From NCBI RefSeq assembly GCF_902652985.1, contig NC_047021.1, forward strand, positions 35,960,001 through 36,024,000: DNA of 64,000 bases. The letters are read 5' to 3'. How positions within the stretch are numbered: position 1 is the first letter of the stretch; each line of letters opens with the position of its first letter. Shown here in pieces: positions 37,236 to 59,137 of the stretch. Origin of the DNA: Pecten maximus (taxonomy: Eukaryota). The translations under genes were made by a program, and so were the position numbers. A model generated the notes under the pieces. The model had not been told where the DNA came from, made no database searches, and was given only the letters and a program-made list of their open reading frames with translations.

Positions 37236-37278
37236 ATGGCGGCACTGGGTACGCTGTTATTATTCCTGTCAGGAACAG
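37236..37278 (+). CDS. Gene B exon 1: signal peptide of a cysteine/tyrosine-rich (CYYR1-like) membrane protein
   Basis: caacATGGCG context; MAALGTLLLFLSGT followed by G|gtaagt (phase 1). Joins exon 2 to give ...SGTGVALA-VDCY. Confidence 0.82.
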
Positions 37279-37353
37279 GTAAGTCATTTTACTTGGATTT
37301 ACTTACAGTTATAAATCCTTTGTCGGTTGATTGTCCACCATGTTGTTTATACC

Positions 37354-37435
37354 CAACTTCGCTAGCCAAGGGTGTTCAATACGATACTCTCCTATTCACC
37401 CTTGGCGGATCTCACGACAAAACCGAAGTTCCCGC
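37354..37435 (+). repeat. Left terminal inverted repeat (82 bp) of the AcademH-type element
   Basis: caacttcgctagccaagggtg...accgaagttcccgc is the exact reverse complement of 45876-45957. Confidence 0.97.
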
Positions 37436-37533
37436 ACTGCGCCACCTGCTGGATAATCACAGTTGCGTCCCTTTCATTTACGTAACGCCCGACCAATCAA
37501 AATGCTCGTACTATTGAACAATGAACTGAGAAA

Positions 37534-39400
37534 ATGGCCGCGCCCTTTCAGCAACAAGAAATTGTGTGCAACAAATTTAAAATACAACAGCTTAGGTCGA
37601 CACAGATACGAGCAATCAGTTCAGTTAATGAAGGGAAAGACGTTTTTGTCGGGACAAGAACTGGGAGCGGAAAATCGTTGGCTTATGAAAGTTATCCACT
37701 GTTAAACGAAGGGAAAATTGTGCTTGTGGTTGCGCCTCTTGTTAGTATCATGGACGAACAGTGTCGTCGTCTCAATGAACTAGGATTTAAGGCCACGTAT
37801 ATCGGCAAGAGCAACGGCGACAACGATGCTATTTTAGCTGGACATTTTGATTTCATATTTGGCAGCGCGGAACAGTTAGTGGAAGACACAACATGGCGAG
37901 CTATGCTAACAACTGAACCCTACCAAAGCAAACTTGGTCTTATAGTTGTAGATGAAGCACATACCGTAATAAAGTGGTAAGTTTAGAAACTATTAATATA
38001 TGTAGCACTTCATAATTAGGTGTGAGGTTTCCTGAAAACTTATCAATTTATTATAATTGAAGCAGAGAATGAAATACAAATTATGTCTTATTTCAACTTC
38101 ATCACAATAGTACATCGATTTGAAAAAGAAAAAAAGAAAAAAAAAATTAGTCTATTGGAATGTCTTGTTAATTGTCTATAAACAAACCATGCTAAATGTT
38201 AAATATTCTTTAAATTAAAGGGGCCAAGGTACAGACAAGGAAGGACCTTTTCGAGGTAGTTTCTCGAGGATTGGAGAATTAAGGTCCCTGTGCAACAAGG
38301 TTCAGATCCTTGCTCTGACTGCAACTGCAGGACCAACAGAAAGAAGAAGAATCATGAAGAGTCTATGCTTCAGATCAGAATCAGACATTGTTGTCGATTC
38401 TCCAGACAGACCGAACATAAAGATCACCACCATCTGTATCCCTAACAATGATGATCTTTCAAATGTGTTCAAATTCTTGATTGATGACTTTCAAAGAAAA
38501 ACAATAGCGTTTCCCAGGCATGTGATCTTTTGTGAAAGCATAGCAAATGTTTCTAAGGTGTATTTAACTTTTCTTAAACATGTTGGACAGCTGCGTAATC
38601 ATTTTGAAATGTACCATAGCAAAACAAATGATAAAATCAAGGAACAAATTAGAAAAGACATGTCAGAAAGTGGTAATATCAGAGTTCTGATTTGTACGAA
38701 TTCGGCTGGTATGGGGGTGAATTTTCATGATGTGAACAACATTATCCACTATGGCTTGCCAAGAGAAATGGACACTTTTGTGCAGCAAATGGGTCGAGCT
38801 GGTCGCGATGGAGGATACAGCAATGAACTTGTTTTGTATAAGCTGCACAAAGGACATCTAGGTAGAGTGGAGGGTGAACTAGTAAAACTTGTAAAAGATG
38901 ATGTCACATGCAGGCATAAAACACTGTGTGATTCATACGTGACTGCACATGCACCTATTACACCTAAACATAAATGTTGTGATGTTTGTGAGAAACAATG
39001 CGATTGTGGTGAGGAATGCTGCCCCGACATCCATAAAGTGTTCACAGTTCATGACGATATCGAGGATGAAGATGTTGAAATGGAGAGAGATGTGACAGAT
39101 GAAGACAAGAAAATACTGAAACATAAACTTTCTGTGTTAAAGTATTCACTTGAATCGGATCTAAGCAACATTGTGATGAAATCAGAAATACTGCATGGAA
39201 TAACTGACCAGGTCATTGAAGACGTTGTGTCAAGCTGTCATAAAATTTTTACAACATCTGACGTTTTGAAAATGTTTCCAGTTTGGTCGTTTGAAGTCGC
39301 TGTGGAGATTATGACAGTTATAAATACTGTAACTGGTGACACCGAGATGTACAATATGCTCTCGATGAGTGATGAAGTTTCAGATGATGATGCTGATTAG
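37534..39400 (+). CDS. Transposon-encoded RecQ-like superfamily 2 DEAH helicase; exons 37534-37976 and 38221-39400, 540 aa
   Basis: Motif 0 LRSTQIRAI; Walker A GTRTGSGKS; Ia VVAPLVSIMDEQ; II VDEAH. The TG|gtaagt...aag|G splice restores WGQG..PFRGSFSRIGELR and motif III ALTATA. Also IV IFCES, V CTNSAGMGVN, VI QQMGRAGRDG, and RQC-like Zn ligands CRH...CCDVC. Joined length is 1623 nt with no internal stop. Confidence 0.92.
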
Positions 39401-40193
39401 TGAGACTTTTGTCATAGTACTTGTTTTTATAATATGTACAAAGCATCAAGAAAATTCATTTGTTCTACTTTTTTTCTGTACACAGTCGGGAGTCATATTA
39501 TGGCAAAATATAAATTGTATATTACTAGTCGTCACAGCATTTATTTCTAAATTGTTGAAAAAAGAACAAATTTTAATTATAATGAATTGCAAAACAACAG
39601 GACTTGCTCCCAACACTACATTTTATTATCGGTTAAATCGACAACAGAATTTATGTGTTGTTGCATTGGAAATGTATGGATACAAGTTTAGACAATGGTA
39701 GAAAGTTGGAAATTCTTACAAAAAAAAAAGTATTAATCTTGACAAAGTATGAATGTAAGTGAATGATTCATTACTTTATAATTCTACCTGTTGTTTTAAT
39801 ATAATTTTACTTTTAATTACAATTTCATGTAATTGGACCAGAAATAGACAATCATGCAACATGACTCAAGATTATATGTACAAACTATATGAGACTGAGT
39901 ACAAAGTATTACCTGTAATTTGGATTATCTTATATATGGCCAGTATATATTTGTCTGCATTAAATATATTACATGAAGTATAGATGTCAACTTTTCGTTT
40001 TGTATTTTATGGAAAATTTCTTTAACAGAGATGAATAAACATTTTCATGATGACAGGTGTAACATTTCATCATAGAGACCACAGGAGAGATCAAACAGTA
40101 CATGGATGTACTTTGAAATACAAAGTGTCAAAAGTCTTATACTTTGCTAATACTATGACATTCCTAAAATGGAATAGTGATGCCATCATGCAT

Positions 40194-43100
40194 CTAATGC
40201 AATCCTTCAACAGAAAGGCGTTCTTTGGCACGTGTTACCCAAGTATGAAAGTCTTGGACCTTTACCCTTGAATAAATGTCCTTAAAGCCACGGAATGAGT
40301 GGAATTCACGTCCAGGAATGTTCTCCATAATACCTGCCTTAATTAATTTTTCAACTATAAGACTAACATCGCCAGCTTTTGAAACTACAGGTCTTTTTGT
40401 TCCAGACTTTTTTGCATGGCCTTGATTTGCTATATTTTGCTTTATAGCATCTTGTACTTGGACAGTGAGTGCAGCTTTTCTTGCACTTTCATAGGTTGCA
40501 TTGGAACCCTGTGCTTGCACTTTTTTCTTGATTGCTTGCACTTGCAGTTCAACAAGGTTGTCATTTGGTATGTTATGTCCTATGCCACCATGTAAGTTGG
40601 ATGTACAGTTCCATTTATATTCAAACGACATTCTTGGTGAAAGAATTCCATAGATATAGGCCAAAAACTTGAACAGCCAGAGTTGATATTTTGTATGCCT
40701 CCCAACATTAGATAGCAGTAGTTGGAATTTGGCTGTTTCTGTAATTCTGTCACCATCCCCCATTTTATAGGCATCCTCAATGTCCCGCAACAGCAATGCA
40801 CACTTCATAAAGGAAGCTCTGTACAGGGCGATGTGATCAGGTGAATGACCATCCTGTCTGTCCACTCCAAATGTCCATTCATGTTCCCTGCTAAGATGTC
40901 TTTTCAAGAACCCAACTTTCTTGAAAATTTTGTTGCATTCCACGCACTCGTACCTGTTTCCTACATGATCGAACATGTCTTTTAGTGCATCATTTTGGAC
41001 GTTCAGCTCTGAATACTGTGCATTAACCATTTCCAGGTCTGCAATTATGAATTAAAATTCACAATATAAATGTAGCTTTACAAATTGTACATTTTAAGAA
41101 ATGATCCATCTCTCAGAAAAGTAAAATTGATTAATATTTGTTTTCCATGGTTAAGATATTTGATTTGTTTTTCAATAAATGAAAAACTTGCAAGATTTTT
41201 TTATAGCATTCTACACTATTTTTTTCAAATAACATTAAAACTTGAACAACTTGTAGAGAATATCTTCTCCAGATATCTTCATATTGCATTTGTATTAAAT
41301 AATTTTCTTAAATTAATTAAAAATTAAAATTCAACTTTTTATAAGAAATGCACTCAACTGTTTTCTACTTTGATGTACTTGTACAAAATATCTTTTGATA
41401 TCTGATACAAAAATTTGTATCGGGTATGGTCATCCACAATAGCAAACAATGGTTGTTTCCTGTTGGGTTCGGCTTCCATCTCACTTTGACCCAAAAGATG
41501 CATACAGGCTGCCACAATGTAAGAGTCAAGGACATCATCCATAAATGAAAAGTGAGCCCTAGAACATAAGTCACATTTAATTTCAAGTTATGAAAACATA
41601 AAGAGTTTCCAACTTGCACATTAACTAACTGAACATGATTTTCTACTTTACAATTTTACGGATAAATGTAGAGAAAGTTTATGATTGAAATATTATTGAA
41701 GTTGAAATTCACTTTTCTAACTTTTTTAAAATTCATTTTTATGATTACCTGTACTTGTCAATGACACTTTCTGCACCTTGGACATCAATACGGTTGATGA
41801 CATTCCTCAGGTTTGCTAGGGTTCCTTGATCAGTTGCTGATGACTTGTTGTAAAAGATCTGGTAGATCAACTGAAATACAATAAAAATGAAAAAAAGTTA
41901 AAAGAAGAACGCTTTTCATACAGATTTCTATTATAAACCAAAGAAAAAGTCTATTACCATTAACCTTACAACTTTATCAAGCATTTATTTAAAGAATTAA
42001 TGATGATATTAAAAGAAAGTATTACTAAATACATTTGTATCACAAGAAAAATACAACATTTTATATTTTGCAGAACACTTTTACTATTGAGTTAATGTTG
42101 AACTAAGAAACAAAAAAGAAAAGATTGATTTCTTGACATAATTAATGAAAACCAGATTATGACTGTTTATATATCAATATTAGGGAAGCAGTGTTAGTAC
42201 GGAACAGGACATGCAAGACTCAACACTGGTTTTGTTGTATAGACCCAAAAATTAACACCATGAACTTGCATGCAGTAAAAAATAAAACTTAATGCAAACA
42301 CAGATTGTTAAAGTCAATAAAGAGATCAACATCACAAGGGTGTTCATTTAATCCCTGGAAAAATTATGGAGAGATCTTCTCTAAAGGTGAATTGTAACCC
42401 TATTTATTATGATATCATTTTCATACAAGATTCATTTGGTAAGTTTTCAGCATTTGTTTACAAAATAAGAGATATTTAGAATTTCATCAAGACATTTTTC
42501 TGAAAAAGGGTAATTGAGACAGAGAAAGGCTTCCTGTATGTTGTTCAGTGAGGTAGCAACCAGCTACTACAGAGAACATATCCTCCCTAAAGTGACGCTG
42601 GCTATTCCCAGGGTGACCAACTTGGCAAACTAACAAATAATTTGTATGGATTTTTTTTAATGTTTCCATTTTTATTTTGTTTGATTAGGATTCATTATAA
42701 CTGCTGATTTACCCGATACATCTGTGACATGTTCTCAATCGGGAAGATTCAAACACCCAGGTATGTGAATCAAAACAGTTTCTAAAAAGTATGCAAGAAA
42801 ATTGAACTTATTTCAAAATTATATGGCATTCTGAATTCTAATCTACATCTACCTAATAACTTGAAAATTGTAAAACATGCCTTGTAACTTGAACAATGAA
42901 CTGGTTTGACTTCAACAGGATTACCAAAAGGAGATTCATCATTCTATGAAGTCCCTCAGGCCTATGCACAACTCCTGCAAGTTTCTCAAAATCACTTGGA
43001 CTGTTCAACATTGCTAACTGAGCCCAGTATGCACGCTCATTTGTTAGCACATCACCACCAAACACTTTCTTTTTTATGACAGAAGATTCAGCATCGTGTG

Positions 43101-45801
43101 GGATATATCTGTTATGGATATGCTCTAAAATACTGATCATGTCTTCTGTTTTGTTCTCACTTTTATCTAACAAGTCTAATATGACAAAATTAGATTTCTG
43201 GGAAGATTCCTTCATAAATGGGTGTTGAAGATACTTTGGCACACAGCATTCATATCTCTTCAGATGATTTACATGCTTAACCAGAACCCTCATGATATGA
43301 AATATAAATCTCTCCTCCAATGACTGACATTCTTCCAAACTTGGAATAAACTTGGAGTTTTCTAGGAGACTGATGTCAGCTGGTGCAATGTCGGAAAGAT
43401 CAGGATTAGAAATGCGTTTTTCAACACCAACCAGTAAAAACCAGTGCCAGCTCTGCCGACGTTTTTCTTTGGTCATTTTTGACACACTTCTGGTAATATC
43501 TATGTTATCCCCTATTATATCACTAGACTTGCTCCTACCAGATGCCTTCTCAACTGCAAGCTGTGCCTCTTGTGTCTCCCTTGTGTCAGTCTGCTTCTCT
43601 ACAGCATGATGAGCAGGTTCTAAATCAAAAGACAGCATATTAAACATTAATGCATGAATGTATTATATCAGTTAAGTTAAAAAAACATAAAATATAAGAA
43701 AATTATTAGTGACAATGTCAAACAAAAACAATATTTATTATAGATAAGGATGTTATAAAATACAAAACTCTGTTTTTATAGTTTTACAAGGAACGTTTTA
43801 ACTTTTTAAAGCATTAATTTACTAATTGAATTTGCCCTAGAATTGATAAAAAGTGTATACATTAATTATATGTAAATAATTAGGCCAGTCTGATTAAATC
43901 TGATATAAGAAATGAGATACTGGAAGTAATATAAATTGCTTGTATCCTATAAAATTGAGAATCTGAGAAAATATCAAATGAAATATTAGAAATACACATA
44001 TTCATTGTACTAGAATACTTATGTATATCTAGTTGAAATTTTTTTTAAAAATCATGCCATTCCTGTGATTCACAACTCCAATTTTAATACATACCATTGC
44101 ACTCTAACTCAATTTTCTCCTTGATTAACAAGTCTTCAATTTGTTTACTTTGGTGATCCTGTAGCTTTGACTTCATTTTTGACATTGCTGATGTGGATAC
44201 ACACACACCTAGTCTGTTCAGCACTGCAATACACTGAAAGTAAACAAAAATAGACAAAGTCACAAATGATGAAAAAAAATTAGAGGTATTTTCTTTTCAT
44301 TTGTATTATTTAGTTCTAAAGAACTAACTTGATATATATAGAGGCACTACATTGATTAAAATATGAAAATATTTTCAAAATACTTAATTTGAAAGTGTCA
44401 TGTCATGTCATGTAAGTGCATCAGTATAATTATATTGCATAGTAGTGTGAAATGACAACCTTTATATAGCATTTACAATCCACTAACCTCATCAGTGGCA
44501 CCACAATGGTCCAGTACCTGTCCGATCACATGATGGAAGGCTGTCATGTGTGTATTATGGAATTTCAGAATAAGAGCGGACACTACTGCTTCTCCAATTG
44601 ATGAGTTCTTTACCAGGGTTGATATAAGGTTATGAAAAAATGGTGCCCATATCTTTACTTCAGTGATGATGTTTTCAAAGGAAAATGATGTCAGATTCTT
44701 GTGGTCTATTCTTCTAAATAATGACAGATTTAATGTTGAAGTTAATTTAGAAATTTCTTTCTGAATGTCTCTCAAAACACATTTTCTGATTGGTTGTTGG
44801 AGGGCTGAATACACACACTTGGCTGCTCCTGGTTTACCATACATGATACTTTTAACCATTGCGATGGAACCCTTTTCCCTCAATACTTTTGACCTGACCT
44901 TGTCCTTGATTCTGTACAACACCTGAAAATAATAAGGCATTTGCTTAGTTAGATAAAGCATTGGGAAAGGAGAAAACTTAATTGAAGGTCCCTTCAATTA
45001 TATTATTCCTGTAGTGTACTATACGATATTCATAAAAAAAATATCTCGTTACCTGCAATTTACATTATGAAGGACATAGTTCAATTTAGTTGTCACCGGT
45101 ACTCGGATTATGATTCTGAGTAACATATGATATCAGTTAAAAATCACTACACTATAAATTAAGTATTCAGATACATTCTAAAACCTTATAAAAAAATCGG
45201 GGTTATTGATGTACAGTCCCTACTCAGAATCCCAAACTAAGCCTCTGTAACGTACCGAAAAAGTAAAATCTTAAAATGTCTATTTCTATTGTAATTATTT
45301 AATACATACCTTGATCTTTGATGGTGTAAACAGTTTAACTTTCACACCGGTTATAGCTGGCTTTGACGTTTTAGGTGTCGAAGCAGGCGCTGTTTGTACA
45401 GCATGCGTAGAACGTGAAGGTGTAGTCCACAGAGCCTTTTTTGATTTCCTTGGTGTTGGAGTGTGCTGCAGAGGCTTAGTTCGCTTTAAACTTTTAGGTG
45501 TTTGTGTTTGTGGCATATTTGTCAGATATTTGTCTCTGAGTTCTGAAACAAGTTTCTGTTTTTCATTCTTCAGCGTTTCCAATTTTGTTACGAGATCGAA
45601 GTCGATTTTTGACAATTTGTTTAATTTTGTAAAACAGAATCCACATACATATTTACTTTTACCATCGGTTTGGAGAGCAACATACCCTATCACTTGACTA
45701 AGCTGGTCGAAAACATTAAATGTAGGGCCAAATATAATTCTTCTCGACTTCGCTGGCAGCTGATTGTGACACACACGACATGTCTCCGTGGGCGCCGCCA
45801 T
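40194..45801 (-). CDS. Academ-type DDE transposase; 7 exons (45801-45310, 44922-44488, 44233-44095, 43619-42925, 41870-41749, 41558-41359, 41038-40194), ~975 aa; alternative in-frame ATG at 45816
   Basis: All introns are GT-AG with compatible phases (0,0,1,0,2,1), giving 2928 nt open. Motifs: LNRLGVCVS, IIGDNIDI (D1), VFGGDVLTNERA (D2), EGLHRMMNL, HNIPNDNLVEL (E). N-terminal CRVC...CGFC zinc finger and internal C2H2 finger CVECNKIFKKVGFLKRHLSREH. The donor after exon 6 (A|gttgag) is weak. Confidence 0.85.
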
Positions 45802-45875
45802 CTTTGTTGTGTACATTTACAACGCGCGTTTTAATTGGTCGGTTAAATCTAACCGCATCCAATCAAAATGTAGCA

Positions 45876-45957
45876 GCGGGAACTTCGGTTTTGTCGTGAG
45901 ATCCGCCAAGGGTGAATAGGAGAGTATCGTATTGAACACCCTTGGCTAGCGAAGTTG
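45876..45957 (-). repeat. Right terminal inverted repeat (82 bp) of the AcademH-type element
   Basis: gcgggaacttcggt...gctagcgaagttg, followed immediately by TSD gtttatacc. Confidence 0.97.
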
Positions 45958-48446
45958 GTTTATACCGTGATGGACGTTAGGTGACGTCATTGATAGCCTT
46001 GTAATTGGGTTGAAATGTTCACCTGTTCGTTAAATTGTAAACAGTTTGGTGTGTAGCATATATGCAGTTTATAGAATACGGTATTGACAACTATACGTAC
46101 AGTATATAAGTCACCCTTATCAGTCCTTTGGAACAGATACACATTTGTGCCAGCATATTGTTTTATCATTCTCTACGTATACAACAGCTGGCCCACCAAG
46201 GTATTTTTCTCTTGTCAGTATCCCGTACACTGAAAATTCTGTTGTTGATAGACGATACGCTTAGATAGTCGAGCTTCAATTAAAATCGACTTATTAGCTA
46301 TTACAAACGTCTACAATGACTGAATGTATTGTACGCTAATTACCGCCTTTATGTATTGTACAGGTAGGCGTTTAGTTTTAGTTTTCATTGCAATAAGTAC
46401 TTTGGTTGTACGGGTGGGACACTTCTTCGGCATTGCAATCAATGTTATATGAATACTTCACGAAAGGTATTGAGTCTAGTACACGGAGGGTATTTTTATA
46501 TAAAAAAAGTGGATACCTAGTGAAAAAACGTGCCTTATTAAAGACTTTTAATGAAGAAAAACTGCAATGATACAAACGAAATATATCATCCATTGAATGA
46601 AAAAACGATATTAATAGACAATAGAAAGTACCCGGATGCAATGAATTATATTGCAAAATACAAAGAACTCATAAGGCATTAAGACGTCACGATTTTCTTC
46701 AAAAGAATATATATTAAAGTTATTTATCTGTTAATGTTCGCGAGGGTTTAATTTTGCTAAATTCGCGGTCATTAGCGCGAAAAAAAGAAAGAAATGAAAA
46801 CAGCGAATATTTCTGTATGTACACAAACATGTAAATAGGTGTTTAATACTTCATACTGTTTACAAAACCATGTTACGCGAACTTTAATTCCCCGAACTAG
46901 TTTTGACTAGCTATTTATGTCGGTCAACCGTAAAAAAATGTCCTCTGCAATTTAAACGGTATACAGTACTTCATCGAACATCTAAATTGTTACGATATTG
47001 ATGAATTGTGTGGATCAATAATGTACTCTCAGACCTAAAATTTATTATTGACTGAGGCCTTTTTCCTGATTTTCCTGATGAATGATCATATTGTTGACCC
47101 CTGGTTTCACTAACGAGTACTACAATGACGAAACAGCTCTATGCTGCAGTTTTATATTCAATATTGTGCATATTTGTTACCTTTAATACAAATCTAATGT
47201 AAGGACTCCATATGTTACAGGTACTAAATACAAGCTGTTCATGATCTTTTCTAGGATAATATTTCATTACATCTTAATATCCTTTGTATTCATGGCGATC
47301 ATAGATTGACAGCAATACTAGTAAATGTGTTAAACTCTTAATTTGTATTCTTTAATTCAAATAATGTGCAGATCATAACAACAACAATGCAATGTGTCAA
47401 TTATTTATCACCGTAGCCGACAATATTTTGACGGCCTCCCACTTGATCTAACTTTTCCTACCGTACTCTTATAAAAAAAAACCCGGTGAAATAACATTTT
47501 AGGGACATCCGATGTTTTCCACACACACAAATACATGTATTATTTATATGGGGGAAAACGTTTAAACATCACACCTTAGTGTATCATTTGTTAAATTTGA
47601 TAAGAACAAAAGGTGTTTAGCCAGGTATCCATATGGTACCTAACAGGATGCCGATACACGATACGAGGGCTGATTGATATGTTGTGAGCCTCGAATCGAA
47701 GGATTATTTCTCAACATAATCCCCTTCACTATCCATACACTTTTGTCAGCGGTGTTAAAGGACCTCAATGCCACTTTTATAGAACTCCTTTTCTTAGTCA
47801 GAGAATAGTAGGACTTAAAAAGAACATCCTTGAGTACCTCCTTCAATACAAGGCTCACAACATATCAATCTTCCCTCGTATAAAGAACAAAACTAAAGTG
47901 GTATCAATGGTTTATTGCCTAATGAAATTTAATTTTAAGAAAAACTTTTAAATTGTAACCAGTTATTGGATATAAAGCATGGTTCATGAAAAATGCTTAA
48001 ATGGTTTAGATTAACTCATTAGATATACTTGCATTTTCTTGAAGATTTTAGTCTCATGTCACATTTTTCTCACTTCCTTGATGTTAAAGATTTCGTGTGT
48101 TTGTTTTGTTTGTTTGTTGTTTAGTTTACGGGTTATAAAATCTTTGGACCATCTAGTGGAGCGTATGTAAAACAGATACTAAGGACAGAAAACAAATACA
48201 GACAGAGAAGGAAAGAAAGATTGAGAATGAGAATGACAGAAGGGAAATGAAAAAAAAAACAAACAAAAACAGAAAAAAACAAAAAAACAAATCCCAAATG
48301 TTTAAATGAGGACAGAAGATACATTAATGATCTCTTAAATGTCTCTGAAGTAGGTGTCAGCAACTGTATTATCCTAAACATTGCTTTATATACAATAAAT
48401 ACATAATATCTGTCAATAATATGCTAAATTGGTGTTTCATTTTCAG

Positions 48447-53122: not shown

Positions 53123-56100
53123 TTACTCAATGTCTGACTCGAGCAAGAGCACGAGTTTGGTCACTGGACGCGTTAACACATTGGAAGGGGTCTTAACCTT
53201 CACGAATCGCACAATGTCATGTTTGTCTTTCACAACTTCCTGAATCCTACCGGTTATCCACGCATACCTAGGTGTACTATCAGCGATCAGCACAAGATCT
53301 CCAGTCTGCATATTACGTCGTTTCTTCATCCATTTCTGGCGTCCTTGCAAAAGCGGTAAGTATTCCTTGGTCCACCTATTCCAGAAAATATCTGAAAGGT
53401 ACTGTATCTGTCTCCACCTTCTTCTGGCATAGTTATCCGTGGCGACGAATGTTCCAGGTGGGAAATACTCTCCAGGCTGAAGCAATAGCAGATGGTTTGG
53501 GGTCAAAACCCGTAGGTCAGTTACGTTATCCGATGCTTCAGTTAACGGGCGTCCATTTAAGATAGCCTCTACCTCACAAAAGAGTGTCTGAAGTCCTTCG
53601 TCATCCAGTTTCGCATTCTGCTCATGCATAACAGAGTACAACACCTGTCTCACAGACCTAATGAGTCTTTCCCAGACTCCGCCGAAGTGAGAACCGGAGG
53701 GAGGATTGAATTCCCACTGAATGCTACTCTGCAACATGTTATCACGAATTTTGTCTGTGTTCCATTTCTGAATATTTTCCTTCATTTCTCGTTGAGCACC
53801 GACAAGGTTGGTTCCGTTATCCGATCTAATAAATACAGGTTTTCCTCTGCGAGCGATAAATCGTCGAATGGAGTTGATGCAAGAATCTGTATCGAGCGAC
53901 GCAGCAACTTCTAAATGGACCGCACGAGTCACAAGACAGGTAAACAATACCCCATATCGCTTTACCACACTCCTTCCGCGTTTCAGTTCAAAGGGTCCGA
54001 AGAAGTCCATCCCAGTTCTGCTGAAAGGAGGCTGATCAGCTGCGAGTCGCTCTGCGGGTAAGTTTGCCATCTTTTGCTCAACGCATGGAGCTCTGTATTT
54101 CCTACAAGTCACACATTTGGAAAGAATAGATTTCACCAGAGTGCGAGCACCAACAATCCAATATTTTTCTCGAATGAATGCAAGAACAGTGTTCTTTCCT
54201 AAGTGACCACATGATCTGTGGGCATCATCCACAACGAGTCTCGATACGACAGATTCCCTAGGCAACACCACGGGGTGTTTTGCATCATACGAAATTTCAG
54301 CTCTTTCAAGACGACCTCCTACGCGAATGACACCATCTTTAACAAAGGGGTCCATCTTGAATAATTTCGAAGACTTCTTGAGTTTTCGCGACTGAACACC
54401 ATTGTCCTGGTGAAGGATCTTGCTTTCGGCTGCGAAGTACTTTCGTTGCTCATACTTAATCAACGCGGCTTCAGCTCGTTCCAGAATATCCACAGACAGA
54501 CACGCTGTACGAAGGTTTTTCTGTCCTTTGAGAAGTCTATCCTGTCTCTCTTTCGACAATGCTAACTTTATTTTCTGGTCGCGTTTCACAGGATCAGATT
54601 CTGAACTGCTGATGTCCTGTTTTATCTGCCGGCTCCTCTCAACAGCTCCCTGCAGGTTGTCCATAGCTCTCATAAGCCATCCAGTAGCTCTCCTAAGCTT
54701 ATTAAAGTTGGAGTAATAGTCGAAAAGATTTTCGACACCACTGTTTGTGTCTAAAACAACTGATGTAGCGCACGCAGTCGTCCTTATTTCAGGATCATTC
54801 TCTTTATCCGTGATCTTAACATCCTTTTCCACAACGGGCCATTCACGTTCGGATTTCCAGAGGAACATTGGTCCACGAGTCCACGAGTCAGGCAACTTCG
54901 AAATGCTCGTTCCTCTTGATGCAACATCAGCTGGATTCTCCTTAGTGTTGATGTAATACCAGTCATCTTCCGACGTAGCTTCGTGGATAAGAGCAATGCG
55001 GTTAGCTACGAACGTGTGGAAGCGTAAATTCTTGTTTGCGATATACCTTAAGACTGAAGTGCTGTCAGTCCAAAAGAAGAATCGATCTATGTTGTAATTC
55101 AGCTGTTCTGTCACCATCCTGCCCAACTTCACTAGAGAAGAGGCAGCTGTAAGTTCCATCCGGGGTATAGTCACTGCCTTCAGTGGTGCGACTCTCGCCT
55201 TCCCGAACAAGAACGAGCAGTGGATCTTTCCGGTGACATCAACGAGTCGAAGATAGAATACCATTCCATATCCAATGTCACTTGCATCTGCGAAACCATG
55301 AAGTTGACAGGAGGTTACCTTGCCGAGGTTTTTCCCTTTGTAACACCGATCAATGGTAACATGCTCTAGTTCAGGTAGCTGAAGCAGCCAATCGGTCCAG
55401 TCCTTCAGATCTTTTCCTGTGATCTCCTCATCCCATCCCTTACCATCCCTACAAAGTCTTTGCAGAATTGACTTGGCCTTAAGAACAAACGGGGATGCAA
55501 TTCCTAAAGGATCGTACACTGAGCTGGTTACTGATAGAATACCTCTTCTAGTAACGGGCTTGTCTTTCATCTGAATTTGGAATCCAAGGGAGTCATTCTC
55601 CATGAACCAATAAACTCCGAGAGCTCTTTCGATAGGTGGCTTACTATCCAGACTCCACAACTTGACGTCTAGGGCACGATCACCCTCTGGAATAGATTCC
55701 ACAACCTCATCACTGTTACTCGTCCATTTGGTAAGTCGGAATCCTCCGGATTTACACATTTGAGTCACATCATGTATAAGACTAATCGCCTTCTTCTCTG
55801 TAGCAACGGAGGTCAGACAGTCATCGACATACATATTTCTTTTCAGTGCGTCCTGAACTTCTTGGGGAAACCGTTCTTGACTGTCCTTTGCAGTTTTCTG
55901 AAGAGCAAAGTTGCAAACACTGGGAGATGATGAGGCTCCAAACAGGTGAACCGTCATCCTGTAGCTCCTTGGCTCATTCGCAGTATTCCCGTTGGGCCAC
56001 CAGTAAAATCGCAGATAGTCTCTTTCATTTACTGGGACCTTCACCTGATAGAACATCGCTTCAATGTCTCCAATGACAGCCACTGGTTCCTCCCGGAATC

Positions 56101-59065
56101 GCATCAACACACCAAGAAGATTGTTTGTAAGGTCAGGTCCCTGGAGTAAGTTGTCGTTAAGGGAGACACCTTGATATCGAGCAGAGCAATCAAACACCAC
56201 TCGAATCTTGTTCTTTTTCTTGTGGTATACACCATGATGAGGAATGTACCAGACCTTTCCTTTGTCAAATCCCACAGGTGCTGGTTCCGCATGACCTTTT
56301 ACCAACAGTTTTTCCATGAAGGCAGTGTAATCTTCTTTGAACTTGGGATCTGCCTTGAACCTGTTCTCAATGCTGCGTAATCTCCGTTTAGCCATTACCG
56401 AGTTATCAGGCAAAATAGTGACCTTGTTACGAAAAGGCAACGAAACGCAGTAATGTTCTCCATTCTTATAAATAGAGTTTTCAGCCATATCCAAAAATTG
56501 TTTGTCCTCCCTCGAGTCTTCTTTTCTATCGTCAATAAGACGCTCAGGGAAATCGAGGTTCATAGATCTCTTAACCATGTCTTCGATGTCTTCTCCTGAA
56601 TCCTGAATGTGAACTCTGTTGACTTGTATAGTACCGCTTTCTCGAAGAACATTCCAGACCACCCATCCAAGCTTAGTTCTTGTAGCATGTGGTGATCCAC
56701 TAGGGCCTGCAAGTATCTCAATAGGCGAGTAGGCATCTGGTACGTTGCTGCCAATCATCAAACCTATCTCACAGTTAGGCTCAGCTAGTGAAACCTTTGC
56801 TAAGTGTTCCCACCTTGACACCTCTGCTTGTGTTGGGATGTGCTTCTTAGACACGGGCATTTTCTCCTTCGTGAACACTCGCGGAAGATCAATAGCATTT
56901 TCCGAGTCAATGTCACTTACTTGCAGTCCACTGATGGAAAATGTGTTCATGATAAATGGCTCACCCATTGTACTCAGTGTAAGCTGTGTCTTCTTACCTC
57001 TAGCTCCAAGCTGTTTCATAACTGTCTCGGTGCAAAACGAAGCGCTACTACCTGTATCCAAGAATGCGTATGTCTCTATACTATGAGGTTTATCACGCAA
57101 GCGAATTCTAACTGGGACTATCGCCATGGCACAAGACACATCCCCCTTTTGATCTTCTTTTGCGATAGCATAACCAGTACTGGCATTCGATACACTAACA
57201 ACTGACGAGCTTTCTTCGTTGTGTAAGATAGATGGATGACTTTTTTTGCATATGCCGCACTTGGAACGATTACGGCATCTCTTCGACATGTGGCCTTTCT
57301 TGAGACAGCCAAAGCATAATCCCTTTTCTTTAATGAAGTTGACTCTTTCGTTCATAGGTTTGGTAGTTATCTTTTTGCAAGTATCCAGAGAATGGGAAGT
57401 AGAGTCACAGAAGAAACACTTATAATTCGGGGCTGGAGGAGGTACGGTGTCACTGGTGCTCTTAGGTATAGAATCTGTAACAATCTCTGGAACTGCATTG
57501 CTGGAACGTGCAATCTTTTGCGGAGTCTTTGGTCTTGAAGTCCCAGTGGCAATACTTCCATACGTAGGGTCGTTGATTTTCTTAGCCTCTGTCTTCACAA
57601 ACTTCACTAAGTCCTTGAACCGAACCTTCCTCTTTGCTTCCTTGTACTTATATACTTGGTTCCTCCATTTATCATGCAGATAGAAGGGTAGTTTGAGCAT
57701 TAATTTCTTAATATTGTCCGAGTAGTCAAGAACGCCATTTGATTCTGTGCCAACTGCATTATCACACTCTACAAGAAACAAAGAGAAGTCATCGAGTGCC
57801 TTCGGGTCTCCAGGACGAATGGTGGGCCAGTCTAATGCTTTCTTGATGAAAGCTGTCGCTATAACTTCCTCATCGCCATAGCGATCCTCCAGCTGACTCA
57901 TGGCTGCCTTATAAGCCTTGTCGCCGTTAAGATGGCTGAATCCTGACACCACTTTATGTGCATCTCCGAATGTAAGTTGTTCAAGGTAGTTCATCCTTTC
58001 ATCGTCATCATCAGTGTTGATTACAACTTTCGCGTGAAATTGACGAATAAATCTGCGATATTCTAGAGGATCTCCACTAAACTTCTTTACCTCTGCCACA
58101 GGTTTTCTTAAATGTTGAACTACCGACTGAACTACGGTTTGTGAATGGGACGAATCAACATATTGTTCAGGTAGTGTTCTCGATGACACTTCTGCTACAC
58201 CAGTCATATGCGGTCTAGGTCTATCATATAGGATTGGAGGGGGACTTGCACAAACACTCTCATCTGTAAATCGTACAGGCAATGGTCGCGGCTTAGGGGA
58301 GGTAAATCGCGGTTGCTCGAACGCAAGAGCCTGGTCAACTGAAGCATTAAGATTTTCATTTGAGTCGTACTTGTCGAGTACTCCGCTTCTCGCTTGAGCG
58401 ACAGCTATACCGGTATCAAGTTCCAGCTCTTCCTCTTTGAGCTTTAGCGACAACTTAGCTAACTCAATTTCATGTTTCTTTGATAACGCTAGTTTCCTTG
58501 TCTCTAATTCTACCCTAACCTGTTCTTCTTTGATACGTTTCAGAGACGCGTATGAACTGGCAGTACTGGAAACGGATACATTATCATCGGCTTCTGGATC
58601 AGTTTTCTTTATAATGCCTTGGTCTATTTTCTCGCCAGCCACACTCAACTCTTCGGCTACAGATAAAGTGTTCTTACTCAATGTCATAGCACTCCGCGAA
58701 GAAATGTAGTTCTCAATCCAACTTTTGAATTGTTTCGCAGAACCATAATTCTCATTGAACCTTTGAGCAAACTCATCATGCTCATGGGAAGAGACTTGGG
58801 GCAGCAAAATGTCATACAGTTCCAAATATTTTTCGAACTCACTCATCCACATACTGTATTTTTTACGCACAATATCCAAAGGTTCGTCATCTTCAGTGGC
58901 TATTTCTTTTAAATATCTTTCTGACCTACATAGAGACTTGTATTTTTTGTCAAGCTGTTCCATATTGTACTGCATGCCTTTCTCACTAAATTTTCTGGCC
59001 CGTCCAGAATCTGAATTTAAGTCATACATGTAACCTTCTACAGCTTCTCTGTCTCTAGTAGCCAT
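53123..59065 (-). CDS. BEL/Pao gag-pol polyprotein (gag, zinc knuckles, aspartic protease, RT, RNase H, integrase), ~1980 aa
   Basis: Uninterrupted ORF; first ATG at 59065 (MATRD). Knuckles CFFCDSTSHSLDTC / CFGCLKKGHMSKRC / CGICKKSHPSILH; protease AFLDTGS; RT YVDD; RNase H HGFADAS; integrase HRSCGH..CVTC, GMDFFGP, RSDNGTN, GVWERLI. The PR-RT-RH-IN order is as in BEL/Pao. Confidence 0.96.
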   Translation of the reverse strand: MATRDREAVEGYMYDLNSDSGRARKFSEKGMQYNMEQLDKKYKSLCRSERYLKEIATEDDEPLDIVRKKYSMWMSEFEKYLELYDILLPQVSSHEHDEFAQRFNENYGSAKQFKSWIENYISSRSAMTLSKNTLSVAEELSVAGEKIDQGIIKKTDPEADDNVSVSSTASSYASLKRIKEEQVRVELETRKLALSKKHEIELAKLSLKLKEEELELDTGIAVAQARSGVLDKYDSNENLNASVDQALAFEQPRFTSPKPRPLPVRFTDESVCASPPPILYDRPRPHMTGVAEVSSRTLPEQYVDSSHSQTVVQSVVQHLRKPVAEVKKFSGDPLEYRRFIRQFHAKVVINTDDDDERMNYLEQLTFGDAHKVVSGFSHLNGDKAYKAAMSQLEDRYGDEEVIATAFIKKALDWPTIRPGDPKALDDFSLFLVECDNAVGTESNGVLDYSDNIKKLMLKLPFYLHDKWRNQVYKYKEAKRKVRFKDLVKFVKTEAKKINDPTYGSIATGTSRPKTPQKIARSSNAVPEIVTDSIPKSTSDTVPPPAPNYKCFFCDSTSHSLDTCKKITTKPMNERVNFIKEKGLCFGCLKKGHMSKRCRNRSKCGICKKSHPSILHNEESSSVVSVSNASTGYAIAKEDQKGDVSCAMAIVPVRIRLRDKPHSIETYAFLDTGSSASFCTETVMKQLGARGKKTQLTLSTMGEPFIMNTFSISGLQVSDIDSENAIDLPRVFTKEKMPVSKKHIPTQAEVSRWEHLAKVSLAEPNCEIGLMIGSNVPDAYSPIEILAGPSGSPHATRTKLGWVVWNVLRESGTIQVNRVHIQDSGEDIEDMVKRSMNLDFPERLIDDRKEDSREDKQFLDMAENSIYKNGEHYCVSLPFRNKVTILPDNSVMAKRRLRSIENRFKADPKFKEDYTAFMEKLLVKGHAEPAPVGFDKGKVWYIPHHGVYHKKKNKIRVVFDCSARYQGVSLNDNLLQGPDLTNNLLGVLMRFREEPVAVIGDIEAMFYQVKVPVNERDYLRFYWWPNGNTANEPRSYRMTVHLFGASSSPSVCNFALQKTAKDSQERFPQEVQDALKRNMYVDDCLTSVATEKKAISLIHDVTQMCKSGGFRLTKWTSNSDEVVESIPEGDRALDVKLWSLDSKPPIERALGVYWFMENDSLGFQIQMKDKPVTRRGILSVTSSVYDPLGIASPFVLKAKSILQRLCRDGKGWDEEITGKDLKDWTDWLLQLPELEHVTIDRCYKGKNLGKVTSCQLHGFADASDIGYGMVFYLRLVDVTGKIHCSFLFGKARVAPLKAVTIPRMELTAASSLVKLGRMVTEQLNYNIDRFFFWTDSTSVLRYIANKNLRFHTFVANRIALIHEATSEDDWYYINTKENPADVASRGTSISKLPDSWTRGPMFLWKSEREWPVVEKDVKITDKENDPEIRTTACATSVVLDTNSGVENLFDYYSNFNKLRRATGWLMRAMDNLQGAVERSRQIKQDISSSESDPVKRDQKIKLALSKERQDRLLKGQKNLRTACLSVDILERAEAALIKYEQRKYFAAESKILHQDNGVQSRKLKKSSKLFKMDPFVKDGVIRVGGRLERAEISYDAKHPVVLPRESVVSRLVVDDAHRSCGHLGKNTVLAFIREKYWIVGARTLVKSILSKCVTCRKYRAPCVEQKMANLPAERLAADQPPFSRTGMDFFGPFELKRGRSVVKRYGVLFTCLVTRAVHLEVAASLDTDSCINSIRRFIARRGKPVFIRSDNGTNLVGAQREMKENIQKWNTDKIRDNMLQSSIQWEFNPPSGSHFGGVWERLIRSVRQVLYSVMHEQNAKLDDEGLQTLFCEVEAILNGRPLTEASDNVTDLRVLTPNHLLLLQPGEYFPPGTFVATDNYARRRWRQIQYLSDIFWNRWTKEYLPLLQGRQKWMKKRRNMQTGDLVLIADSTPRYAWITGRIQEVVKDKHDIVRFVKVKTPSNVLTRPVTKLVLLLESDIE

Positions 59066-59137
59066 CTTGTTCCAGATCTGTATCACTTAAAAGCTTGAAG
59101 ATCATACCTCTTACATCTGGGATGATACGTCAATGAA

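Follow-up and report, generated by a model that had tools for sequence, protein, structure and literature searches.

A stretch of 64,000 nucleotides from the scallop Pecten maximus (NCBI RefSeq assembly GCF_902652985.1, contig NC_047021.1, positions 35,960,001 to 36,024,000 of the forward strand, read 5' to 3'), called below the window, carries at positions 37354-45957 an element of 8,604 bp, delimited by a repeat search and by reading of the flanks. Two convergent genes, for a RecQ-like helicase on the plus strand and for a predicted DDE-type transposase on the minus strand, lie between identical terminal inverted repeats (TIRs), which are flanked by a 9-bp target-site duplication (TSD). The element is one of at least five insertions, and very probably an autonomous, recently mobile two-gene transposon of the AcademH type. 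The window DNA is free of N residues. Features are listed in window coordinates.

37345-37353, no strand: left TSD GTTTATACC, present as a single copy in the empty allele on scaffold C3684
37354-37435, plus: left TIR, 82 nt, starting 5'-CAACTTCGCTAGCCAAGGG, 100% complementary to the right arm
37489-37509, plus: CCGACCAATCAAAAT motif, some 25-45 nt ahead of the helicase ATG
37534-37976, plus: helicase exon 1, aa 1-148, with Walker A GSGKS (aa 44-48) and DEAH (aa 140-143); Pfam DEAD 5.8e-18
38221-39400, plus: helicase exon 2, aa 148-540 and stop, with Helicase_C and motif VI GRAGRDG (aa 339-345)
39401-40193, no strand: spacer of 793 nt between the convergent stops, 3' untranslated region
40194-41038, minus: transposase exon 7, aa 700-980 and stop, with C2H2 finger (C731, C734, H747, H752) and end of the insertion domain
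41359-41558, minus: transposase exon 6
41749-41870, minus: transposase exon 5, whose acceptor is used by an alternative splice
42925-43619, minus: transposase exon 4, aa 361-592, with predicted RNase H-like core strands, GDNID (D398, D401), FGGD (D550) and H585
43537-43539, minus: internal alternative donor; the exon ends at 43539, the intron GT is 43538-43537, joined to 41870
44095-44233, minus: transposase exon 3, across which homologues P0158 and P0160 align contiguously
44488-44922, minus: transposase exon 2, N-terminal helical domain
45310-45816, minus: transposase exon 1, aa 1-169, with ZAD-like zinc module (C13, C16, C58, C61) and disordered linker
45876-45957, minus: right TIR, 82 nt, found by inverted-repeat search
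45958-45966, no strand: right TSD GTTTATACC, from the flank sequence and C3684

The repeat search revealed a single outstanding inverted pair in the region (37353-37435 and 45876-45958), with arms of 83 nt that are 100% complementary. The outermost base of each arm is part of the TSD, and the TIR therefore measures 82 nt. Element boundaries are fixed, because exactly one GTTTATACC joins both flanks in the empty allele on C3684. An earlier note, made from the letters of the window, had described identical 82-bp TIRs and a perfect 9-bp TSD around a complete element with two convergent, intron-containing genes in open frames. The ends are borne out by the repeat search and the empty allele, and the gene content by the models given below.

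With the element as query, a search of the whole P. maximus assembly (918,306,378 bases in 3,983 scaffolds) identified four full-length copies, on C7 (the window copy), C11, C14 and C19. A fifth locus, set apart by a different flank, is an end piece on scaffold C3735. An internal-deletion derivative of 1,484 bp resides at C14:3141177-3142660, and a TIR-TIR copy of 189 bp, resembling a miniature inverted-repeat transposable element (MITE), on C1; older relatives of the element were also found. Near-identical copies and non-autonomous derivatives, both worth searching for according to the earlier note, are hence present in the genome. All full-length copies feature a perfect 9-bp TSD of their own (GTTTATACC on C7, GGTAAAACT on C11, GGCGTCCAG on C14, TACCATACC on C19), and so does the C14 deletion derivative (GGTGACACT). 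The lack of 9-bp TSDs in other copies, contemplated earlier as a ground for giving up the interpretation, is contradicted by these five insertions. In the old MITE-like copy on C1, the TSD bases match at 7 of 9 positions. No clear target-site consensus emerges from the TSDs, a sample too small for the purpose.

The four full copies vary at 42 of 8,612 aligned columns, and differ pairwise by 0.15-0.20%. Allelic heterozygosity in P. maximus is 1.71% (PMC7191990); divergence among copies is an order of magnitude lower, which marks them as very young. Both frames are open in all four. The C14 copy has AG changed to AA at the exon 5 acceptor of the transposase, and the window copy alone has Cys in place of Ser at helicase residue 414.

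Empty sites complete the picture. On the unplaced scaffold C3684 the two window flanks are joined through one GTTTATACC, with 2 single-nucleotide polymorphisms in the last 60 nt of the left flank; most simply, this scaffold is probably the other haplotype, and the insertion would be heterozygous in the sequenced animal. The C14 insertion is found in an empty version on C3597 and a filled version on C1824. The C11 copy is nested in another repeat, other copies of which show the uninterrupted target. The empty alleles that the earlier note had proposed to look for thus exist within the same assembly (C3684), and its view of a very young, intact copy agrees with the small distances, the open frames and the empty allele. 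Judged from these comparisons, mobility of the element is very recent.

The helicase bears in RefSeq an ordinary gene name, 'putative ATP-dependent DNA helicase Q1', as it would if two host genes happened to lie between inverted repeats and no transposon were involved. The odds of this are negligible. Chance is excluded because the four near-identical copies occupy unrelated loci on four chromosomes, with unrelated flanks and each with its own perfect 9-bp TSD; deletion derivatives have the same ends, and the empty sites, with a single copy of the target, refute a host-gene origin of the arrangement.

The transposase gene of the element consists of 7 exons on the minus strand, all bounded by GT-AG introns and in phase, which sum up to 2,943 nt and 980 aa. 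In tblastn searches, proteins of Pinctada (P0001), Argopecten (P0158) and Mizuhopecten (P0160, 80% identical) that are homologous to the transposase align contiguously across the exon edges. The open spliced frame of about 975 aa predicted earlier stands as to frame, its length being 980 aa; the total of 7 junctions in the two genes is the same. Database searches were performed exon by exon or with database homologues; length and stops, as well as residue numbers and their mapping, were taken from the joined translation. No unassigned open reading frame (ORF) of at least 100 aa is left in the element. The open frame 42684-42490, examined as a possible exon, was discarded: homologues leave it uncovered, the RNA contigs matching it come from a high-copy repeat, and the exon chain is complete without it.

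Two introns of the gene host sequences repeated elsewhere. In all four full copies, intron 4 (42525-42640 in the window) contains part of an interspersed repeat of high copy number, with at least 486 candidate loci that are about 76-80% identical; over its 40-nt core (42532-42572) RNA contig depth reaches 2,660, owing to transcripts from elsewhere in the genome. Intron 1 (45093-45214) contains, again in all four copies, a segment of some 120 bp with 84-93% matches at dozens of loci, often arranged as adjacent inverted pairs, which looks like one arm of a MITE.

Exon 4 and exon 7 match the Pfam family DUF6589 (profile positions 6-153 and 254-409, respectively, the latter at 5.2e-15). At E <= 1 no exon matches in Pfam the P, hAT, MULE (Mutator-like element) or any other named transposase family, and THAP, BED, Tnp_P_element, MULE, Transposase_mut and SWIM domains were not found in Pfam searches. 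A scan of 1.84 billion proteins returned 982 relatives of exon 4, the named ones from bivalves, a hemichordate and amphioxus. In an alignment of 33 full-length relatives, GDNxD, GGD(V)LTNER, RPEGLH, the C2H2 ligands and NIPNDNLVE are near-invariant. The latter motif lies in exon 7, and includes the candidate catalytic residue E863 (D859). The scallop genome hosts at least 89 exon-level DUF6589 matches, belonging to many families.

The fold of the protein was examined on an AlphaFold2 model of a Pinctada homologue of 1,065 aa (predicted local distance difference test score, pLDDT, 78.7). The best transposase rows of a Foldseek search, Hermes (prob 0.72) and ISCth4, were under significance. In a full structural scan the P element transposase ranked at the top (Z 10.4, root mean square deviation (rmsd) 6.3 over 366 aligned residues), followed by Hermes (Z 9.0, rmsd 6.9, 285 aligned), by retroviral integrase cores (Z 7.7-8.9, rmsd 3.2-4.4, 121-146 aligned), and further by Tn5, Mos1, Sleeping Beauty, ISCth4 (IS256-type, Z 6.8), RAG1, Transib and Mu. 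Nearly all other matches are RNase H-like or DDE enzymes, with modest Z values. Exon 4 of the window, folded alone with AlphaFold2 (pLDDT 88.6), matched integrase cores best (Z 7.3, rmsd 2.6, 83 aligned residues). Conserved acidic residues occupy the places of a catalytic triad, on strand 1, just after strand 4 and in the C-terminal helix, and D398 or D401, D550 and E863 (or D859) are the candidate triad. The models thus picture the minus-strand protein as an RNase H-like DDE core that is split by a large insertion domain of helices with a C2H2 finger, while a ZAD-like zinc module and an N-terminal helical domain lie ahead of the core. Absence of a DDE fold from this protein, the other finding by which the earlier note would have been overturned, is not what the models suggest.

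The ZAD-like module in exon 1 matches Pfam zf-AD at E 7.5e-4 and 20.1 bits, under the 28-bit cut-off. Residues 9-90 of the homologue model superpose on ZAD crystal structures with Z 5.0-5.9 and rmsd 3.0-4.0, and a transposase homologue is named 'ZAD domain-containing protein' in UniProt. ZAD is a dimerisation domain of Drosophila proteins and, as far as we know, is regarded as largely arthropod-specific. The ZAD-like module heads bivalve transposases in window exon 1 and in homologues P0001, P0313 and P0310; the presence of a ZAD on a mollusc transposon may be relevant to how the domain arose or spread.

The helicase gene is made of two exons, 37534-37976 and 38221-39400 (plus strand, GT-AG), for a total of 1,623 nt and 540 aa, with the stop at 39398-39400. 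The donor GTAAGT follows 37976, exon 2 starts after AG at 38221, and the join restores the RecQ motif DEAH...W/G...FR (the slash marks the junction). The predicted protein has the length given in the earlier note, and is identical letter for letter to RefSeq XP_033745061.1 (P0181), 'putative ATP-dependent DNA helicase Q1 [Pecten maximus]'. Matches of both exons in the PDB are mostly to the RecQ family, the strongest all being RecQ-family proteins (WRN, RecQ, BLM, RECQ1, RECQ5), and the best NCBIfam model is TIGR00614 (recQ_fam). The earlier identification as a RecQ helicase holds as RecQ-like, given these matches and the intact Walker A, DEAH and motif VI, with scores just under the family cut-off. 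Exon 2 features at aa 400-415 the cluster CCDVCEKQCDCGEECC, including C414, private to the window copy; the Cys cluster spanning aa 378-415 could be a diverged zinc site. By its sequence, the protein is best described as a RecQ-like superfamily 2 (SF2) core helicase with a Cys-rich, acidic C-terminus of its own. A search for contigs encoding P0160 or P0181 gave none.

The helicases of the four full copies are all labelled in RefSeq as the host gene 'putative ATP-dependent DNA helicase Q1' (XP_033745061.1, XP_033728741.1, XP_033754627.1 and XP_033760826.1), and several 'ATP-dependent DNA helicase Q-like SIM' entries are helicases of a second family of the element in the same genome. Relatives are numerous in bivalves, mostly annotated as RecQ, WRN or BLM-like host genes. 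Many of the 'RecQ-like', 'WRN-like' and 'BLM-like' bivalve entries probably have the same transposon origin, and counts of RecQ genes in bivalves are inflated by transposon genes.

The second family (family 2) resides at C10:38539783-38549020 (9,238 bp), with perfect 85-bp TIRs and TSD CTATTTAAG. It shares with the window element the exon-by-exon layout, and its proteins are about 50-67% identical to those of the window. An element of Pinctada imbricata (L039:9834-19589, 9,756 bp) has 66-bp TIRs, TSD GTGGCAACG and convergent transposase and helicase genes. The convergent pair was found also in a contig of the European Nucleotide Archive (ENA) and in two Saccostrea species; in Branchiostoma only helicase exon 2 was found. 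No helicase lies within 10 kb of the Ptychodera relative P0007. The TIRs of the window family, of family 2 and of Pinctada all begin with CA(A/T)CTTC.

The left TIR, for which folding as single-strand DNA gives z = -3.75, contains nested palindromes at 37365-37407 (AACTTCG/CGAAGTT and GCCAAGGGTG/CACCCTTGGC). Family 2 retains the inner pair CCAAGGGT/ACCCTTGG despite a different loop, and the Pinctada TIR lacks it. The palindromes could be paired binding half-sites or form a hairpin. The CCGACCAATCAAAAT motif upstream of the helicase has an inverted partner at 45822-45842, upstream of the transposase ATG, and the pair is a candidate CCAAT-type promoter element. An Rfam scan of the element gave no match at E <= 0.1.

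Elements encoding a helicase and making 9-10-bp TSDs are classed as AcademH, and those with 3-4-bp TSDs as AcademX (PMC10045372). The window element, with its internal helicase gene and its 9-bp TSDs, bears the published signature of AcademH and was accordingly filed as AcademH-type. Features of AcademX are missing: no exon or ORF has an XPG match in Pfam, and the TSD measures 9 bp, not 3-4 bp. A profile search for XPG-fused (AcademX) relatives, whose query words came from the N-terminal 500 residues, found none and returned truncated ZAD isoforms. The kind of element is already known, as the earlier note had stated, and the window element is another member of it.

The best structural matches of the transposase are the P element and Hermes enzymes, and long TIRs with 9-11-bp TSDs are also typical of MULEs. 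One may ask on these grounds whether the RecQ-like helicase gene was combined with a transposase of another or unnamed DDE superfamily (P-like, hAT-like or MULE-like). We regard this as improbable: the exons match DUF6589 only, with nothing of P, hAT or MULE at E <= 1 and no THAP or BED, and the combination of helicase gene and TSD length corresponds exactly to the AcademH signature (PMC10045372). DUF6589 has been reported as enriched in rust fungi, where Academ elements are most abundant (PMC5751038). The supplements of PMC10799480 mention neither DUF6589 nor Academ. Assignment to AcademH is preferred.

Transcription was assessed by comparing a 6-kb stretch (37500-43499) with assembled contigs from four runs of four studies (X1, X3, X5, X8). 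The helicase junction 37976/38221 was seen in X1 and X8, the transposase junctions 41749/41558 and 41359/41038 in all four runs. Depth is zero over most of intron 4, which indicates that the runs are RNA, not DNA. Both genes are transcribed and spliced. Of the predicted junctions, three of the four tested were hence seen in RNA; the fourth, 42925 to 41870, was not, and another splice was found in its place. Contigs of X1 and X3 with exons 7-6-5 continue from 41871 into letters mapping to 43540-43569; the normal acceptor of exon 5 is here joined to an internal GT donor after 43539. The splice removes 614 nt of exon 4, inclusive of D398, D401, D550 and H585, and shifts the frame, with a stop after 13 codons and a predicted product of 400 aa, which keeps the ZAD-like module and the N-terminal domain. 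Depth over the exon 4 body is 0-2 versus 20-50 over exons 5-7 in X1, X3 and X8; in X5 an unspliced contig covers the exon 4 region. The core-skipping form is the main assembled isoform in the sampled RNA.

RNA contigs run unbroken across the spacer between the two genes (X1 record 3, 38220-41038; X8 record 23, 38656-40185). These contigs show neither strand nor ends; the 3' ends of the convergent transcripts probably overlap, and could give double-stranded RNA.

Truncated forms of the same type recur in family 2 and in other species. Short ZAD-only proteins were returned by the profile search. The P. maximus RefSeq entry LOC117330830 (P0313, 414 aa) maps to family 2; in it, exons 1-3 and the first part of exon 4 are followed by exon 5, which is read in a shifted frame. 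Isoform X2 of Saccostrea cucullata (P0310, 393 aa) and the S. echinata protein (P0311, 391 aa) contain about 48 codons of the catalytic exon, followed by the next exon in another frame; both loci have an intact downstream catalytic region and a convergent helicase. The Mizuhopecten isoforms X1-X3 all keep the catalytic core, with no truncated form among them. In the P0001 model the donor falls in a short low-confidence linker, the N-terminal helical domain ending at 462 and strand 1 starting at 476. Noise is an unlikely explanation for a splice that falls on a domain boundary and is kept in two scallop families and two oysters. The splice would most likely limit transposition, either through a product that is an inhibitor or dosage brake, or as unproductive splicing.

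The earlier note had called the element apparently active. This stands in so far as it was mobile within the coalescence time of present alleles; full-length transposase mRNA is not among the contigs. The element may therefore be intact and recently mobile, and still not be transposing now in the sampled tissues, the catalytic core being routinely spliced out and little or no full-length transposase made, with the burst over or activity confined to a germline stage outside the sample. The 42925 to 41870 junction in none of four runs, the low depth of the exon 4 body, the frameshift and stop at the alternative joint, and the C14 copy deprived of the exon 5 acceptor make this a possibility to be kept in mind, if not the favoured one: the insertion is probably heterozygous or polymorphic, copies differ far less than alleles do, both frames are open in all four copies, and contigs prove presence, not absence. 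The reading of an autonomous, recently mobile element is maintained.

Contact between the two proteins was explored by complex prediction, with the Pinctada transposase core (P0001 residues 472-1000) and its own neighbour helicase P0214, 100% identical to the L039 gene. Three runs gave interface scores (ipSAE) of 0.63, 0.61 and 0.63, versus 0.01 for the best of three controls; of the solved complexes, 51 of 78 attain the mark adopted for this score, and of the mismatched pairs 2 of 108. Contacts common to the runs make up 38% or more, and the partner has a pLDDT of 74 or higher. Confident contacts connect transposase residues 602-607 and 642-658, in helices flanking the second catalytic Asp, with residues 248-280 of the helicase, in the second RecA domain. 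The scallop equivalents are transposase 518-523 and 556-572, and helicase 254-287. On the transposase side, 9 of 14 interface residues are identical in Pinctada and scallop. The prediction supports binding of transposase and helicase, and the predicted contact surface lies in the part of exon 4 removed by the alternative splice.

A plausible course of events is as follows. The transposase would bind the conserved CA(A/T)CTTC termini, excise the element and integrate it with a 9-bp staggered cut. The helicase would sit in the same complex, its second RecA domain docked on the catalytic core beside D550, and may serve to unwind or remodel the DNA of the element ends or of the target. A system of three products can be tentatively envisaged, in which the transposase and the docked RecQ-like helicase form a two-enzyme transpososome, and the splice generates a repressor made of the ZAD and DNA-binding domains, perhaps with a splice choice between soma and germline.

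A helicase foreign to the transposition machinery, a passenger or a factor that serves the element in donor-gap repair, in replication or against silencing, is rather unlikely. Conservation of its interface residues does not exceed that of the whole protein, and at least one relative, the Ptychodera one, lacks a nearby helicase. The pairing of the two genes, with their convergent order, is kept, on the other hand, across two scallop families, the pearl oyster, rock oysters and the ENA organism, with helicase exon 2 in Branchiostoma; helicase motifs and frames are intact in 4 of 4 copies, and the complex prediction passes its controls. A helicase that takes part in transposition is the interpretation retained.

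Several points weigh against the overall interpretation of a recently mobile AcademH element with a cooperating helicase. Mobility is deduced from copies, TSDs and empty sites. The AcademH filing was made by architecture, TSD length and DUF6589, a family whose connection with Academ is indirect. Foldseek found no PDB match at E <= 0.001 for the 1,065-aa model. The whole helicase scores 198.4 bits against TIGR00614, versus a curated cut-off of 219.8, over profile positions 2-339 of 470, and has no match in Pfam to the Zn-binding PF16124, RQC or HRDC at E <= 1. The stretch compared with RNA covered the helicase gene and the transposase gene from exon 7 into exon 4. Junction 42925 to 41870, which the 980-aa protein requires, is supported solely by gene models of homologues and is absent from the contigs of the four runs; contigs drop rare forms. 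The complex was predicted on Pinctada proteins about 50% identical to those of scallop, and its score is a model confidence, not a measurement. Identity at the helicase interface (9 of 18 residues) does not exceed overall identity.

The surroundings of the insertion include two further features. At 37236-37282, about 65 nt before the TSD, an ATG, a hydrophobic stretch MAALGTLLLFLSGT and a GTAAGT donor follow each other; this may be the putative signal-peptide first exon of a host gene, in whose first intron the element would then reside. On the minus strand, 53123-59086 is an uninterrupted ORF of 1,987 aa with Pao retrotransposon peptidase, RVT_1, integrase zinc-binding and DUF5641 domains. 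It is a BEL/Pao-type long terminal repeat (LTR) retrotransposon with an intact polyprotein frame.

We know of no demonstration of the chemistry of any Academ element. The scallop family provides material for excision and integration assays, with genes intact in four copies, exact ends, a 9-bp TSD, an empty allele and non-autonomous derivatives. The value of the element lies in the direct evidence of very recent mobility, and in two leads that are new here and testable, the conserved truncated isoform and the predicted docking of the helicase. The corresponding hypotheses are that helicase aa 254-287 contact aa 518-523 and 556-572 of the transposase core, and that the conserved alternative splice yields a ZAD protein devoid of the catalytic domain.

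Among known systems, the closest is AcademH, a lineage of the Academ superfamily (Kojima 2020, Mob DNA 11:15, as cited in PMC10045372 and PMC10799480). Like AcademH elements, the scallop element is bounded by TIRs, combines a DDE-type transposase with a separate SF2 (DEAD/Helicase_C) helicase, makes 9-bp TSDs, resides in an animal at low copy number and has no XPG nuclease. The core-skipping isoform, the ZAD-like N-terminus and the predicted docking are, as far as we know, not described for AcademH. Helitrons and KolobokH also host a helicase gene inside a mobile DNA element. Helitrons differ in having neither TIRs nor TSDs and a Rep/PIF1-type helicase fusion, whereas the scallop element has TIRs, a 9-bp TSD and a RecQ-like helicase. 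Kolobok elements have TTAA as TSD; the scallop TSD is 9 bp long, without TTAA. The helicase resembles RecQ proteins (WRN, RECQ1, BLM, bacterial RecQ) in Walker A, DEAH, QxxGRAGRDG and a Cys-rich stretch after the core, and differs from them in measuring only 540 aa, in the acidic C-terminus of its own, in being transposon-encoded and in scoring under the family cut-off.

The P element transposase (PDB 6p5a), the best structural match, has in common with the predicted scallop protein an RNase H core, a large insertion domain and a DNA-binding region ahead of them. The likeness is in the fold only: sequence similarity is undetectable, and the scallop protein has no THAP. TSDs measure 9 bp in scallop versus 8 bp in P elements, TIRs 82 bp versus 31 bp, and P elements encode no helicase. 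The 66-kDa repressor of the P element arises by retention of the third intron. It parallels the scallop isoform as an alternative splice form without the catalytic part, although truncation in scallop results from an internal donor and a frameshift, not from intron retention; if the three-product system holds, the scallop ZAD protein would repress transposition likewise.

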